Sequence record: NC_028945.1
Length of the DNA: 64,000 nt
Reading direction: 5' to 3' (one strand)
The notes beneath the pieces were generated by a model. The model did no database searches. It was not told where the DNA came from and worked only from the letters and a program-made list of their open reading frames with translations. Position numbers and translations under genes: made by a program. Shown in pieces: positions 20,688 through 29,900 of this stretch; the stretch's first letter is position 1, and each line of letters opens with the position of its first letter.

Positions 20688-20878
20688 GTTTGATTACCGT
20701 CGAGGAATATCAAAAGAGGATGCGCGACCATTATGCCAGCCTTTACAAGACCGGCGTGGCGTGCCCGCATTGTGACTCCGAACTCGAATGGTCCGGTAAT
20801 GGTGCATTTTTGACCAAACCACCCAAGAAGCAAGCATATTGTACCGAGTGTACATATTCGACACTTCTCATAGTCTAA
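20684..20878 (+). CDS. Small zinc-ribbon protein
   Basis: CPHC...CTEC. Confidence 0.65.
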   Translation: MSLITVEEYQKRMRDHYASLYKTGVACPHCDSELEWSGNGAFLTKPPKKQAYCTECTYSTLLIV

Positions 20879-21025: not shown

Positions 21026-21247
21026 ATGAGCGCCGACTGGATCGAACACGACGGACTCCAATTTCCGGGCATCGACCCGAAAACCCTTGTGTTGGTACAA
21101 TTTAGAGACGAGGCGGAAACTGACACCAACCCGCGCCCAGCGATTTATTGGGGACCGTGCTGGACACTGATCGACAGAACGTCGCCGACGTCTTCCATGA
21201 ACCGGCATTGCATCGCACGTTATCAAATAGTTGAAGGATTTATATAA
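21026..21247 (+). CDS. Hypothetical protein (WIExxG domain)
   Basis: GGGGA + ATG 21026; related to the repeat unit of 50998..51363. Confidence 0.55.
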   Translation: MSADWIEHDGLQFPGIDPKTLVLVQFRDEAETDTNPRPAIYWGPCWTLIDRTSPTSSMNRHCIARYQIVEGFI

Positions 21248-22482
21248 TGATAAAATACCTTGTGGGCGGCGCGGTCCGCGACCTGAAGATGGGCATGATG
21301 CCGAAGGACGAAGATTACGTGTGGGTCGGTGCGACTCCTGCCGATATGATCGATATGGGCATGAAGCAGGTTGGCGCGGATTTCCCGGTGTTCCTTGACG
21401 CACAAAACCGCGAACACGCACTCGCCCGGATCGAACGCAAGACCGGCGAAGGCTACAAGGGATTCGAATGCGCCTTTGACACGTCGATCACCATCGAACA
21501 AGACCTGATGCGCCGCGATCTTACCATCAACGCCATGGCAATGTTTATGGATGGTCAAATCATCGATCCGTTCGGCGGCATGGACGATCTGAAAAACAAG
21601 GTGCTTCGCCACGTCAATGCGGAAACCTTCAAGGAAGACCCGCTTCGCGTGCTGCGCGTTGCCCGTTTCCTTGCGCGGTGGAAGGATTTTGATGTCGCTC
21701 CGGAGACGTTCAAGCTGCTTCAGGAAATGGCGGCATCTGGCGAACTGAAGACGCTTCAGGCGGATCGCGTTTGGAAGGAAACGGAAAAGGCGCTGTCGGA
21801 AGAAATGCCGAGTCGGTTCTTCGTGTTCCTTCAGATGATCGGCGCGCTGAATGACGTGTTTCCGGAAGTGGCGGCACTGTTTGGGGTTCCGCAACCCTAC
21901 AAGTACCACCCGGAAGGTGATTGCTTCATTCACACGATGATGGTTCTGGACCAAATGACGGCAACTTATCATTCGCCGGTTGCCCGTTTCGCGGCTCTCT
22001 GCCACGATCTTGGCAAGGCGACGTCTGATCCGGCGAAGCTGCCTCACCACTACGGGCATGAACAGCGCGGCGAAGGAATCATCGAACGAATGGCGGAACG
22101 TCTGCCGGTTCCGAATGAATACAAGGAAATCGCGATTGCGGTTGCCAAGTACCACACTCACATTCACAACTTCGACAAGCTGAACAGCAAGACGATTGTG
22201 AAGATGTTCGATGATCTGCCACATCGCCGCTACGAAGGTGATGTGATGTGGATTCTCCCGACTGTCTCGGAATGTGATCACAAGGGACGGACGTCGTTCT
22301 TCGCGAACCGGCACTACCCGAACGCTACGAAGGCGACACAGGTGTTTCTGAAGCTGTCGCAATACAAGACGAGCGATCACAAGCCGGTTGAAGAAATCAA
22401 GGAAATGAAGCCGGAAGCAATCCGGGATTTCAACTATCGAACCAAGACGCGGATTGTCGCGGAAATGCGGGGAGTAGAATAA
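21247..22482 (+). CDS. cca: Multifunctional CCA tRNA nucleotidyltransferase with HD domain
   Basis: YLVGGAVRD, DLMRRDLTINAMA, EDPLRVLRVARF, YHPEGD...HT, LCHDLGK. Confidence 0.95.
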   Translation: MIKYLVGGAVRDLKMGMMPKDEDYVWVGATPADMIDMGMKQVGADFPVFLDAQNREHALARIERKTGEGYKGFECAFDTSITIEQDLMRRDLTINAMAMFMDGQIIDPFGGMDDLKNKVLRHVNAETFKEDPLRVLRVARFLARWKDFDVAPETFKLLQEMAASGELKTLQADRVWKETEKALSEEMPSRFFVFLQMIGALNDVFPEVAALFGVPQPYKYHPEGDCFIHTMMVLDQMTATYHSPVARFAALCHDLGKATSDPAKLPHHYGHEQRGEGIIERMAERLPVPNEYKEIAIAVAKYHTHIHNFDKLNSKTIVKMFDDLPHRRYEGDVMWILPTVSECDHKGRTSFFANRHYPNATKATQVFLKLSQYKTSDHKPVEEIKEMKPEAIRDFNYRTKTRIVAEMRGVE

Positions 22483-24291: not shown

Positions 24292-24570
24292 ATGGGTATT
24301 CAGCAACGCGTGGTGGAGTTTTCCGACTTCGCCAATTCGTTGGATTCCGGATGTCTTACCGAATACAAAGCCGGATGTATGTTGATCCAATTGGAAGCCA
24401 TGCCACACCTTCTGGACCATTTCGGGTGCTGTATGGCATTCGTTCAGAACTGTCTCCGGGCAGATGGCTTCAGCGACCGCGCTTGTTATATGGTCGCCGA
24501 CTATCTGAAGAAACTGGAATGGGAACCACCCGAATACATCATTGAAGGCGAAATGGTTACCCTGATGTAA
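24292..24570 (+). CDS. Hypothetical protein
   Basis: GAGG RBS. Confidence 0.55.
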   Translation: MGIQQRVVEFSDFANSLDSGCLTEYKAGCMLIQLEAMPHLLDHFGCCMAFVQNCLRADGFSDRACYMVADYLKKLEWEPPEYIIEGEMVTLM

Positions 24571-24648
24571 ATTTCGTTTCGTTTGAAATTCCTTGTTGAC
24601 AGAACACCATTATTCGAATAAATAGCTGTTCATCACAAGGAGATCAAG

Positions 24649-24789
24649 ATGAAACAACGAAATCCGATGGCGCGGGAACTCTCCCAATCCATCTACCGCA
24701 AAAAGGTCGTCAAATCCAAGAAGACCTACAACAGAAAGAAGATCGCCGGGAAACGCCATCCCGGCGATTATTTTTTGAAAGCTGCTTGA
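24649..24789 (+). CDS. 46-aa basic ArfA-like peptide (candidate ribosome-rescue factor)
   Basis: AAGGAGA RBS; MKQRNPMARELSQSIYRKKVVKSKKTYNRKKIAGKRHPGDYFLKAA; TTGAC at 24596 and ATAAATA at 24618 upstream. Confidence 0.7.
   Translation: MKQRNPMARELSQSIYRKKVVKSKKTYNRKKIAGKRHPGDYFLKAA
24742..24776 (+). terminator. Intrinsic terminator inside the ArfA-like CDS
   Basis: ATCGCCGGGA-AACGCCA-TCCCGGCGAT-TA-TTTTTT (perfect 10-bp stem); stop codon is at 24787. Confidence 0.8.
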
Positions 24790-24856
24790 TTTCTTCTCAT
24801 ACATAATTCATAACTGTCTCCAATATTTCATCCAACAATCATTGAAAATATAATCA

Positions 24857-25621
24857 TTGGCAAAACTCACGAAAGTCGAGCGACGGAATCACGCGCTCGC
24901 TGAAGACCTATTACATTCCGACAAGCCTCTTTCATGGGAAGACAAGGAATTCATCTACCGCAATTGGCATGAGGGCGCGACCCACAACAATGGCAATGCC
25001 GGTGCGTTCTTCACTCCATTCGAAATGGCGCTGGACTTCGCTTTGGAAGTCGGTGGCGGTCGGATCATCGATCTATGCGCCGGTTCCGGTATCCTGTCAT
25101 TCGGTGTCTTAACGCGACTCGGTCACTATGGCGGCTGGTCCGCACCATCCCCGGTCGAAATCGTCTGTGTCGAGTACAATCCCGATTATCTGGCGATTGG
25201 CAAGCGGCTGGTCCCGGAAGCGACATGGATCAATGCCGATGTCTTCGACGTGCTGGATATGGACCTTGGAAAGTTCGACTATGCGATTTCCAATCCGCCA
25301 TTTGGCAAGGTCAAGCGTTCAAAGAATTCGCCGGGATATTCTGGCGCGGACTTTGAATTCCATGTGATCGACATCGCTTCCCGGATCGCTGATTATGGCG
25401 TCTTCATTGTTCCTCAGAACAATGCTGGTTTCAATTATTCCGGAAAGCGCTTTTATGAGCGGCAGACCGAAGGCAAGGCTGTCAAATTCCAGCAAGACAC
25501 TGGTTTGTATTTTGAATGCGGCATTGGCGTTGACACATCGATCTTCCGCAATGAATGGAAGGGTGTCAGTCCGGCAACAGAGATTGTCTCTGTCACTTTC
25601 AATCCCAATGACATCGGATAA
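24857..25621 (+). CDS. SAM-dependent amino-methyltransferase (probably DNA N6-adenine type)
   Basis: GAFFTP, IIDLCAGSG (motif I), ISNPPF (motif IV); TTG start. Confidence 0.85.
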   Translation: MAKLTKVERRNHALAEDLLHSDKPLSWEDKEFIYRNWHEGATHNNGNAGAFFTPFEMALDFALEVGGGRIIDLCAGSGILSFGVLTRLGHYGGWSAPSPVEIVCVEYNPDYLAIGKRLVPEATWINADVFDVLDMDLGKFDYAISNPPFGKVKRSKNSPGYSGADFEFHVIDIASRIADYGVFIVPQNNAGFNYSGKRFYERQTEGKAVKFQQDTGLYFECGIGVDTSIFRNEWKGVSPATEIVSVTFNPNDIG

Positions 25622-25659: not shown

Positions 25660-26412
25660 ATGTCTCTACTCAAAGAGTTTCGGGAATATCAAAAGGCGCT
25701 TCAGGAACAGGCACTTTTAGCCGAGACCGATGCTTATTTCGAAGCCTACGATCAAATGTACGATCAGCTTGAAGAAGCTGTTGTTTTGAATGAGAATACA
25801 CTTGTCAATCCGGCATTTTCTCCGGGTGAGAAGCTTGCCGAACTTGGAACTCTTGCCAAGCAGATTGCTGGTGGCATCATTTCCAAAGCTGACATTGCCG
25901 ACAAGCTTGGTAGTGTTTACGACAAGTTTAAGAATTTCTTCGAATCGGTTAAAGACAAGTTCAAGACGATCCTTCAGAAAGCCGCCAACAAATTTTCAAA
26001 CACCAAAATCCTTGCCCAATTGAAGCCGCTGAAATCCTTGCTGGATAAGGTCGATGGTCGCGGCAAGAGCCTGTCGAGTATTACTGACTTGGTGCGCGGC
26101 GCGGCGATTTTTGAAGATCGCGAGGATGCCGAAAAATTCGTCAAAGACCTTCAGCGCAAGCATGGCGACAAGATCGTTGAGTTTGTCGAAAAGACCAAAG
26201 GCAGTGATATGGTGTATGGTTATTATGGTACATACCATCTGCTTATCGAGATTGACGGCATCATTTGTGAAATTCAGGTTGCCACGAAGAAGCTTTGGAA
26301 GCAGAAGAAGCTTGCTCATAAGGTTTACACTGCTACGCGTTCAAGCTCTGATGGTCCGTCGAAGGAAGATTCCCAACTGTCCAAGCGTCTCTTCAGCAAA
26401 GGAAATCGGTAG
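25660..26412 (+). CDS. RelA/SpoT-like (small alarmone synthetase fold) nucleotidyltransferase with Glu-rich N-terminal extension
   Basis: LKPLKSLLDK, ITDLVRG, GYYGTYH, CEIQVAT, AHKVY in RSH synthetase order. Confidence 0.75.
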   Translation: MSLLKEFREYQKALQEQALLAETDAYFEAYDQMYDQLEEAVVLNENTLVNPAFSPGEKLAELGTLAKQIAGGIISKADIADKLGSVYDKFKNFFESVKDKFKTILQKAANKFSNTKILAQLKPLKSLLDKVDGRGKSLSSITDLVRGAAIFEDREDAEKFVKDLQRKHGDKIVEFVEKTKGSDMVYGYYGTYHLLIEIDGIICEIQVATKKLWKQKKLAHKVYTATRSSSDGPSKEDSQLSKRLFSKGNR

Positions 26413-27128: not shown

Positions 27129-27334
27129 ATATAAGATTTCCTATTTTTGAGAAAGACCCGGAGACCCCGTTTGAGTACATCATGGGCGCGGCGCTGATTA
27201 TTCTCGCTATCGTGTCTGGTATGGCAATTATCGCCGCATCGATCTTCTTTCTTGGATTCTGGTCAATTCCGATCTATGGAGTGATTGTGCTCGCCATCGC
27301 CTTCTATAAAGGCTATATTAAGTTCGAAAAATGA
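27125..27334 (+). CDS. Small membrane protein
   Basis: Two TM segments; ATGA overlaps. Confidence 0.55.
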   Translation: MNIRFPIFEKDPETPFEYIMGAALIILAIVSGMAIIAASIFFLGFWSIPIYGVIVLAIAFYKGYIKFEK

Positions 27335-27801
27335 GCCGCTATCATCCCTACGATTGCCAGTCATGCGGCGCTCCCATCGGCTATCTTGGTCGGTTCTTCA
27401 AATGGGTTCATTTCCCCGGCTCACATCAGTGTAAGAACACGCTTGATCCCTATAAATACAAGCAGATTCTTGTGGTCCGCAAAGACCTGAACATGCGCAA
27501 GGGAAAAATCGCCGCACAATGCGCGCACGCGACCCTTGCCGCCTATCTCGAAAATTCAAGCGATGAACGCATGGTGGCATGGCTCAAAGGACCATTCACC
27601 AAGATTTGCGTATCCGTCGATTCTGAAGCAGACATCTTGCGAGTGGAGCGACAAGCCAAGGCAAATGGTCTGATCACCAGAATGATCATAGACGCCGGTA
27701 GGACCGAATTTAATGGTGTTCCAACCCGGACGGTGCTCGCGGTCGGTCCCGACACTCACGAAGCTCTACAGCCGATTACAGGAGATTTGAAACTACTATG
27801 A
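27331..27801 (+). CDS. pth2: Peptidyl-tRNA hydrolase type 2 with N-terminal Cys/His extension
   Basis: KQILVVRKDL.MRKGKIAAQCAHA, KICVSV, IDAGRTEF, TVLAVGP, TGDLKLL. Confidence 0.93.
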   Translation: MSRYHPYDCQSCGAPIGYLGRFFKWVHFPGSHQCKNTLDPYKYKQILVVRKDLNMRKGKIAAQCAHATLAAYLENSSDERMVAWLKGPFTKICVSVDSEADILRVERQAKANGLITRMIIDAGRTEFNGVPTRTVLAVGPDTHEALQPITGDLKLL

Positions 27802-29851: not shown

Positions 29852-29900
29852 AATTTGAAAATTCCCTGTTGACATCAGCGGGGAATTTTTCTATTTTCAA
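29852..29900 (+). promoter_or_regulatory. Early promoter whose -35 sits inside a terminator-like hairpin
   Basis: AAAATTCCCTGTTGACATCAGCGGGGAATTTTT. Confidence 0.75.

Follow-up and report, generated by a model that had tools for sequence, protein, structure and literature searches.

Ribosome rescue by ArfA-type factors is textbook biology for Gamma- and Betaproteobacteria. The solved ArfA chains are extended peptides that are ordered only on the ribosome, and factors of this type need an empty mRNA channel. BrfA is regarded as a family separate from ArfA and is longer (about 62 aa in its active form). In E. coli, arfA is expressed from a non-stop mRNA and its product is controlled by tmRNA (PMC8012679), the gene having an in-frame hairpin at codons 52-66, before the stop codon. 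In B. subtilis, a Rho-independent terminator precedes the brfA stop codon and trans-translation represses expression, as we propose for the phage gene described below, and BrfA acts with RF2 (PMC8012679). That review discusses why both bacterial genes are built for expression from non-stop mRNAs, which was the premise of the original prediction for this locus (PMC8012679).

In a survey from 2024, none of 2,376 alphaproteobacterial genomes had arfA (PMC11633108). Phages of Alphaproteobacteria with an annotated ArfA-family peptide are Ochrobactrum phage vB_OspM_OC (p093, for which the annotation comes from the record note), Citromicrobium phage vB_CbaS-RXM (g10; PMC8953757) and pelagiphage HTVC027P (gp30; PMC12753301). 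The HTVC027P gene is transcribed both early and late (PMC12753301), and the passages that our searches retrieved on the RXM and HTVC027P genes mention neither functional work nor a non-stop layout (PMC8953757, PMC12753301). Small proteins found mainly in Alphaproteobacteria also make up DUF7230 (PF23876), whose function is unassigned and which was not mentioned in the literature that we searched; their core, RNPIAKxLRSPxxRxxVVKxKKxYxRK, lacks the GKG of the ArfA loop KGKGS, as does the phage peptide considered here.

The stretch of DNA that we analyzed, i.e., a window of 64,000 nucleotides, belongs to Sinorhizobium phage phiN3 (NC_028945.1; Emdodecavirus, T4 superfamily; 206.7 kb), and a window position equals the record position minus 124,000. 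Like the three annotated phages it infects an alphaproteobacterium and, unlike the E. coli gene, the gene of interest, gp277, is carried by a virulent phage. Judging from sequence comparisons, gp277 probably encodes a phage-borne rescue peptide of the ArfA superfamily that is gated by tmRNA through a terminator lying within its own reading frame. The features of the locus are as follows.

24589..24601, plus strand: promoter-like element of the -35 type, TTCCTTGTTGACA, a copy of a recurring phiN3 motif
24618..24624, plus strand: ATAAATA element, 24 nt before the ATG and 17-18 nt downstream of TTCCTTGTTGACA
24637-24642, plus strand: ribosome-binding site AAGGAG, 6 nt upstream of the ATG, conserved in phiM12 and phiM7
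24649..24789, plus strand: ORF gp277 (MKQRNPMARELSQSIYRKKVVKSKKTYNRKKIAGKRHPGDYFLKAA), 46 aa, coordinates including the stop codon; putative ArfA/DUF7230-superfamily peptide
24661..24741, plus strand: conserved core N5-K31 (NPMARELSQSIYRKKVVKSKKTYNRKK), which aligns with N14-K42+ of E. coli ArfA but lacks the GKG of the KGKGS loop
24741..24769, plus strand: whole hairpin, reaching from base 3 of codon 31 to base 1 of codon 41
24742-24751, plus strand: 5' arm of the hairpin, ATCGCCGGGA
24759-24768, plus strand: 3' arm of the hairpin, TCCCGGCGAT, with a 7-nt loop between the arms
24771..24776, plus strand: T6 tract, with one A between it and the hairpin
24775..24789, plus strand: read-through tail L43-K44-A45-A46 and TGA, beyond the terminator

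Reading of the window sequence bore out both the 46-codon ORF and the strong ribosome-binding site that had been described for this locus. By way of correction, the ORF does appear in the public record, as gp277 (YP_009212521.1, "hypothetical protein"). Near-identical copies occur in phiM12, phiM7 and phiM19, and residues N5, P6, A8, L11, K24, K25, Y27, R29 and K30 of the core are invariant among close relatives. We rejected a 64-aa antisense ORF that overlaps gp277 (24610-24804, minus strand), taking it to be a shadow of the plus-strand frame, which is the conserved one. An Rfam scan of positions 24300-25000 detected no known RNA family, and the window contains no tRNA or tmRNA genes.

Searched by itself, gp277 has no match to ArfA (PF03889) in Pfam at E <= 10, and its score against DUF7230 (18.2 bits, E 0.0028) is under the cut-off, the gathering thresholds of the two families being 25.5 and 27 bits, respectively. 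There was likewise no match in NCBIfam or among PDB sequences, and the PHROGs search returned only a family without assigned function, PHROG 20887, into which gp277 falls. A word-indexed search with the 46-aa peptide recovered itself and one metagenomic relative only, and an exhaustive HMMER search of 1.84e9 representatives yielded 10 matches, all of them small relatives and none of them named, which served as bridge sequences. With the addition of tblastn against phage genomes, the exhaustive search uncovered a family of small basic peptides in Emdodecavirus-like metagenomic phages, in the jumbo Agrobacterium phage Atu_ph07, where the ORF is unannotated, and in ten Pootjesviridae and related phages of Rhizobium, Sinorhizobium, Agrobacterium and Ochrobactrum. 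In the Emdodecavirus, Atu_ph07 and Pootjesviridae genomes, members of this family are labeled hypothetical or lack annotation altogether. Published phage genomes with unannotated homologues are Atu_ph07, P10VF, AF3, ORM_20, OLIVR5, LG08 and Caulobacter phage Cr30, and the loci of unannotated homologues are the following.

L005 1495-1650; L009 1492-1722; L121 from 392; L010 1495-1692
L011 1498-1644; L120 from 398; L122 about 356-502

In IMG/VR, at least 158 viral contigs, many of them marine, encode relatives (loci L039-L117 among them), and one of these contigs, L055, passes Pfam ArfA at 35.5 bits. From these searches, peptides of the ArfA/DUF7230 type look widespread in environmental viruses; no DUF7230 homologue was found on plasmids.

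Matches of individual family members to Pfam remain weak: seven of 16 match DUF7230, all below threshold (best E 7e-6), and the best ArfA scores among relatives (19.3, 12.4 and 11.2 bits) are sub-threshold and in the same register. When 5.8 billion proteins (the size to which the following E-values refer) were searched with a profile built from the phage family, it reached P0152, which carries Pfam ArfA (E 8e-10), P0163, whose JGI name is 'ArfA' (E 8e-9), and P0192 (E 1e-7), which upon rescanning scored 43 bits against Pfam ArfA (cut-off 25.5). The same profile matched many DUF7230 proteins, e.g., from Pseudaquidulcibacter saccharophilus, at E 1e-9 to 1e-7. Comparisons by hhalign linked the phage family to DUF7230 (98.7%, E 4e-16, 41 aligned columns around an RNPxAxxL...VVKSKKxYxRK core), DUF7230 to enterobacterial ArfA (94.2%, E 1e-7), and the phage family directly to ArfA (68.9%, E 4.5e-5). 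All three links agree in register with one another and with the alignment that had been made by eye, in which N5-K25 and TYNRK were matched to E. coli ArfA with GKG deleted. BLASTP reproduced that alignment as well: against an E. coli ArfA sequence verified with PDB 5h5u, N5-R36 paired with N14-R48 (12/35 identical, pairwise E 0.003), and a gap of three residues fell at GKG.

From the profile matches and the hhalign links we conclude that gp277 is a member of the ArfA superfamily, its closest named family being DUF7230, a GKG-less sister of ArfA. The predicted relationship to ArfA thus holds at the level of profiles, through the family and DUF7230, although gp277 alone stays below both gathering scores. 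The metagenomic protein P0152 (70 aa, JGI) consists of two tandem ArfA-like repeats, the first of the KGKGS type and the second of the GKG-less DUF7230 type; therefore, both subtypes occur side by side.

E. coli ArfA (YhdL; PF03889; PDB 5h5u, 5mdv, 5u4i) is, like gp277, a small basic peptide, and within the consistent register (N14-R48) the two share the YxRK motif and a lysine-rich channel segment. They differ in that gp277 is without the first nine residues of ArfA and without the GKG of the loop between KK and YxRK, which is a gap in every alignment, and in that ArfA A18, a residue needed for RF2 activation in E. coli, is not conserved but aligns with R9. The loss of GKG and of A18 counts against our preferred explanation, as does the failure of gp277 alone to match Pfam ArfA, NCBIfam or PDB sequences or to reach the DUF7230 cut-off. 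The OC, RXM and HTVC027P peptides are of the KGKGS type and pass Pfam ArfA, whereas gp277 does neither.

The second half of the prediction, a perfect 10-bp stem and T6 inside the frame with the stop codon about 10 nt beyond the T tract, checks out in its coordinates. Seven of the 10 pairs are G-C, an additional G-T pair (24741/24769) closes the stem, and the perfect arms encode I32-A33-G34 (5') and H37-P38-G39-D40 (3'); the TGA at 24787-24789 lies 10 nt past T6, still in the gp277 frame. Among terminator-like sites between 20 and 40 kb of the window this hairpin ranks first, and its fold has a z of -4.8, with 0 of 200 shuffles equally stable. The likeness that had been seen between its stem and the terminators at 20877 and 39290 is real in that all three have GCCGGGAAA...CCCGGC in common. 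The strong phiN3 terminators at 20877, 35348 and 39290 all lie after stop codons or are intergenic, and that of gp277 is the only strong terminator of the region to sit inside a reading frame. Since intrinsic terminators usually release the transcript according to a 7-9 nt rule, we expect the 3' end at about 24775-24777, inside codon 43, which would give a non-stop product of 42-43 aa.

In the placement of a hairpin in frame and before the stop, gp277 and E. coli arfA are alike. The gp277 hairpin is a classic terminator, whereas that of E. coli arfA is mainly an RNase III site, and the sequence beyond it encodes only 3-4 residues ending in Ala-Ala, compared to 17 hydrophobic residues in E. coli. 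That the terminated and full-length forms of gp277 would differ by so little counts against our preferred explanation. We dropped the idea that the phage hairpin is homologous in position to the E. coli one: its codons, 31-41, correspond roughly to E. coli codons 43-53 and not to 52-66. Judged by sequence, the layout is common to gp277 and E. coli arfA, and the exact site of the hairpin is not.

If the overlap between terminator and reading frame matters, it should persist in homologs, a test that had been set beforehand. DNA was obtained for 11 members of the phiN3/phiM12/Atu_ph07 clade, and all of them have a hairpin at the same codons (IAG...GD); in these Emdodecavirus-like and Atu_ph07 relatives the stop codon lies 17-29 nt beyond it. 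In an alignment of eight sequences, 96% of hairpin cells are paired, as against 24-51% in controls with the partner columns slid, and three pairs have changes on both sides. One of these relatives, L015, has a G-C to C-G swap that substitutes Arg for Gly in one arm and leaves the amino acid of the other arm unchanged; as pairing is kept at the expense of the amino acid, the constraint is on the RNA and not on the peptide. The terminator-before-stop arrangement is therefore conserved among the close relatives, compensatory changes included. Strong T runs are found in phiN3, phiM12, L004, L012, L015 and L127, whereas the run is weak in L016, L017, L126 and L128 and absent from Atu_ph07, which weighs against our preferred explanation; where it is weak or absent, the alternative would be cleavage at the hairpin of the kind that RNase III carries out in E. 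coli arfA (PMC8012679).

Outside the clade, other viral contigs (L039, L040, L043, L063, L068) have textbook terminators (A-run, G+C stem, T-run) of unrelated sequence 0-15 nt past YxRK, and so do alphaproteobacterial chromosomal DUF7230 genes (L020, L035, L021, L026, L037). The stop codons of these viral and chromosomal genes follow 48-480 nt past YxRK, and the intervening tails are not conserved. One chromosomal example is:

L020 2501-2665: DUF7230 gene, with an in-frame hairpin at 2609-2647

Chromosomal DUF7230 genes with in-frame terminators well before the stop were also seen in L035, L021/L023, L026 and L037; the sources of these genes are Pseudaquidulcibacter, Hyphomonadaceae, an Acetobacter-like genome and several MAGs. 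Such terminators (L020, L035) are a feature that DUF7230 shares with gp277, whereas the hairpin-encoded IAG..GD segment and the Ala-Ala end are conserved in the phage clade and distinguish it from DUF7230. In the KGKGS-type phage genes vB_OspM_OC p093 and vB_CbaS-RXM g10, too, a hairpin lies in frame and well ahead of the stop codon.

There are exceptions to the layout: ordinary stops are found in Cr30, in CRP-212 and in many AT-rich marine members of the SAR11 type, and the Pootjesviridae homologues have no hairpin; both observations weigh against our explanation. An invariant GAGGGG(G) motif marks the end of the conserved peptide in Pootjesviridae and related phages. It adjoins the stop codon of a convergent gene, annotated in ORM_20 as an Rz-like spanin, and the ORF continues for 13-36 codons antisense to that gene, in frames that differ between close relatives. 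The motif occurs at the following positions.

L006 1609-1615; L007 1615-1621; L008 1609-1615; L009 1609-1615 (GAGGGGA)
L010 1597-1603; L011 1600-1606; L118 509-515

One idea is that these mRNAs are truncated by RNase III cutting of the duplexes formed by convergent transcripts.

An ArfA-superfamily peptide might bind stalled ribosomes for host takeover and not for rescue, e.g., by occupying the channel to block host trans-translation or ArfB, or by parking ribosomes. Such a role would fit the retention of the basic channel-binding part and the loss of both the KGKGS loop and the A18 equivalent, i.e., features that serve RF2 activation in E. coli; and because the host class is reported to be without ArfA (0/2,376; PMC11633108), its RF2 would not have co-evolved with such a factor. 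However, chromosomal DUF7230 genes of free-living Alphaproteobacteria share the GKG-less core and the tmRNA-gated layout, and a housekeeping back-up factor therefore fits better than an inhibitor. Moreover, an inhibitor gains little if it is destroyed by the very system that it blocks. For these reasons we think it unlikely that gp277 acts in this manner.

The end of the reading frame supplies a detail of this phage clade that formed no part of the original prediction. Among the relatives whose DNA was read, 8/11 end in Ala-Ala-stop (8/13 clade proteins if P0135 and P0125, known as proteins only, are counted), and the codons vary synonymously: GCT GCT TGA, GCA GCA TAA, GCT GCC TAA, GCA GCG TAA and GCG GCA TAA. 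By comparison, only 1.3-1.6% of the ORFs in the window end in Ala-Ala. Synonymous variation of this kind implies that codons beyond the terminator are translated often enough for selection to act on them, such that some translation of read-through gp277 transcripts is to be expected, a point against our preferred explanation. A C-terminal Ala-Ala is the core of the ClpX-recognized end of ssrA tags, and the shared ending suggests that the read-through product may bear a built-in degron.

Alternatively, gp277 might be an ordinary small basic protein made mainly from a full-length mRNA, in which case the terminator overlap would reflect genome compactness and the likeness to ArfA would have no regulatory meaning. 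This is in keeping with a stop codon merely 10 nt past the T run, with the weak T runs of some relatives, and with the preservation of Ala-Ala-stop through synonymous changes, which indicates that the tail is read. Under such a model, though, there is little reason for the other strong phiN3 terminators all to follow stop codons, or for a hairpin to precede the stop in 11/11 close relatives and, in the form of different hairpins, in many unrelated lineages. In those other lineages the stops lie up to 480 nt past YxRK, and the layout is a hallmark of arfA and brfA. Taken together, these patterns render an ordinary gene quite improbable.

Upstream of the ORF, both of the elements that had been pointed out, TTGAC and ATAAATA, are present. 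TTGACA at 24596-24601 is part of a motif, TTCCnTGTTGAC, that occurs nine times in the window (1.4 expected), eight times on the plus strand, at these positions:

16383, 24589, 26435, 29862, 30474, 38174, 46105, 54286 and 56339: copies of TTCCnTGTTGAC

At 29857 and 38171, the motif forms part of long inverted repeats with A/T flanks, which score as terminators too. Both TTCCTTGTTGACA and TTCCnTGTTGAC resemble the S. meliloti sigma-70 -35 consensus CTTGAC (PMC2245857). The ATAAATA could be the -10 of the TTCCTTGTTGACA promoter or, alternatively, a T4-type late promoter (TATAAATA-like). As a heptamer it is not enriched in the window (7 vs. 4.2 expected); TAAATA is kept in relatives at 24-28 nt from the ATG (24 nt in L015, 28 nt in L126), and L015 has a perfect TATAAATA and no TTGAC. 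Possession of two promoter-like elements by gp277 matches the early and late transcription described for HTVC027P gp30 (PMC12753301).

The neighborhood of gp277 includes translation-related genes: a CCA-adding-type nucleotidyltransferase with an HD domain (21247-22482), a weak RelA/SpoT-like protein (25660-26412; 23 bits, below the cut-off) and a PTH2-type peptidyl-tRNA hydrolase (27331-27801; 121 bits), all within 3.5 kb of it. The first and the last of these, as translation-repair genes, speak for our preferred explanation. The phiM7 annotation divides the RelA/SpoT-like gene into two separate ORFs. Metagenomic relatives repeat the gene order of DUF2786/DUF7168 gene, peptide and methyltransferase, and the linkage to PTH2 persists in one of them, L015. 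The next gene downstream is on the same strand and starts 68 nt past the gp277 stop. It is this proximity, and the fact that a ribosome traversing codons 31-41 would melt the terminator, that might suggest a functionless leader peptide or attenuator controlling read-through into the methyltransferase and RelA/SpoT-like genes, but we reject this reading as the main function and consider it highly improbable, given that the peptide core is homologous to ArfA and DUF7230 and has been kept in three phage groups that differ in what lies downstream (L012 has an AAA ATPase there, Pootjesviridae have a convergent gene, and Atu_ph07 has no gene annotated on that strand for about 1.5 kb), whereas leader peptides, to our knowledge, are not conserved in such a way.

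The tmRNA-gated rescue peptide remains our preferred explanation, and both halves of the original prediction, i.e., an ArfA-like peptide and a self-made non-stop mRNA, are supported by the comparisons above. From the homology and the conserved gene layout demonstrated here, we infer where the transcripts end, that the product is tagged, that it works with a release factor and that it carries a degron, as follows. The gene would constitute a self-contained mini transcription unit, with its own promoter, a strong ribosome-binding site, a basic core of ~30 codons and an in-frame intrinsic terminator, and most of its transcripts would end in the T tract at codon 43 without a stop codon. Ribosomes would stall at the 3' end of this mRNA, and the two-piece tmRNA and SmpB of the host, where both smpB and an abundant tmRNA of this form are documented (PMC2245857), would tag the 42-43-aa peptide for proteolysis. 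When trans-translation is saturated, as might happen when a T4-like infection or an RNA-cleaving defense floods the cell with truncated mRNAs, untagged peptide would escape. Its basic C-terminal part could then enter the empty mRNA channel of other stalled ribosomes and recruit a class-I release factor (RF2 in E. coli), upon which peptidyl-tRNA would be hydrolyzed and ribosomes freed for phage proteins. The Ala-Ala-COOH of the read-through peptide, which resembles the ClpX-recognized ssrA end, may serve as a second lock by causing this form to be degraded as well, such that only untagged peptide released from non-stop mRNA would persist. A counter-defense role is speculation; because ArfA-type factors require an empty mRNA channel, help would be expected after mRNA cleavage and not directly after tRNA cleavage.

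On sequence evidence, gp277 is best described as a divergent new member of the ArfA-type rescue peptides. Phage arfA genes had been annotated earlier and non-stop regulation is textbook; what our analysis adds is a proposed function for a rhizobiophage family, the link between DUF7230 and ArfA, and the Ala-Ala end. A likely function is thereby offered for a peptide family conserved in Emdodecavirus, Atu_ph07 and Pootjesviridae rhizobiophages, a function-less Pfam family is tied to ArfA, and the terminator-before-stop design is extended to both. If the inferred action holds, these phages sense the saturation of host trans-translation and respond by freeing ribosomes, which would establish a link between mRNA damage, whether from infection or from RNA-cleaving defenses, and phage protein synthesis. 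More tentatively, and in a generalization toward which we do not yet lean, large phages of Alphaproteobacteria might routinely bring a tmRNA-gated, release-factor-dependent rescue factor, doubly locked in the phiM12/phiN3 clade, and DUF7230 might be the ArfA that Alphaproteobacteria had seemed to lack, its genes sharing the non-stop design. If this were true, the accepted distribution of ArfA-type rescue would need revision, and ribosome rescue would become a recognized function in phage takeover or counter-defense.
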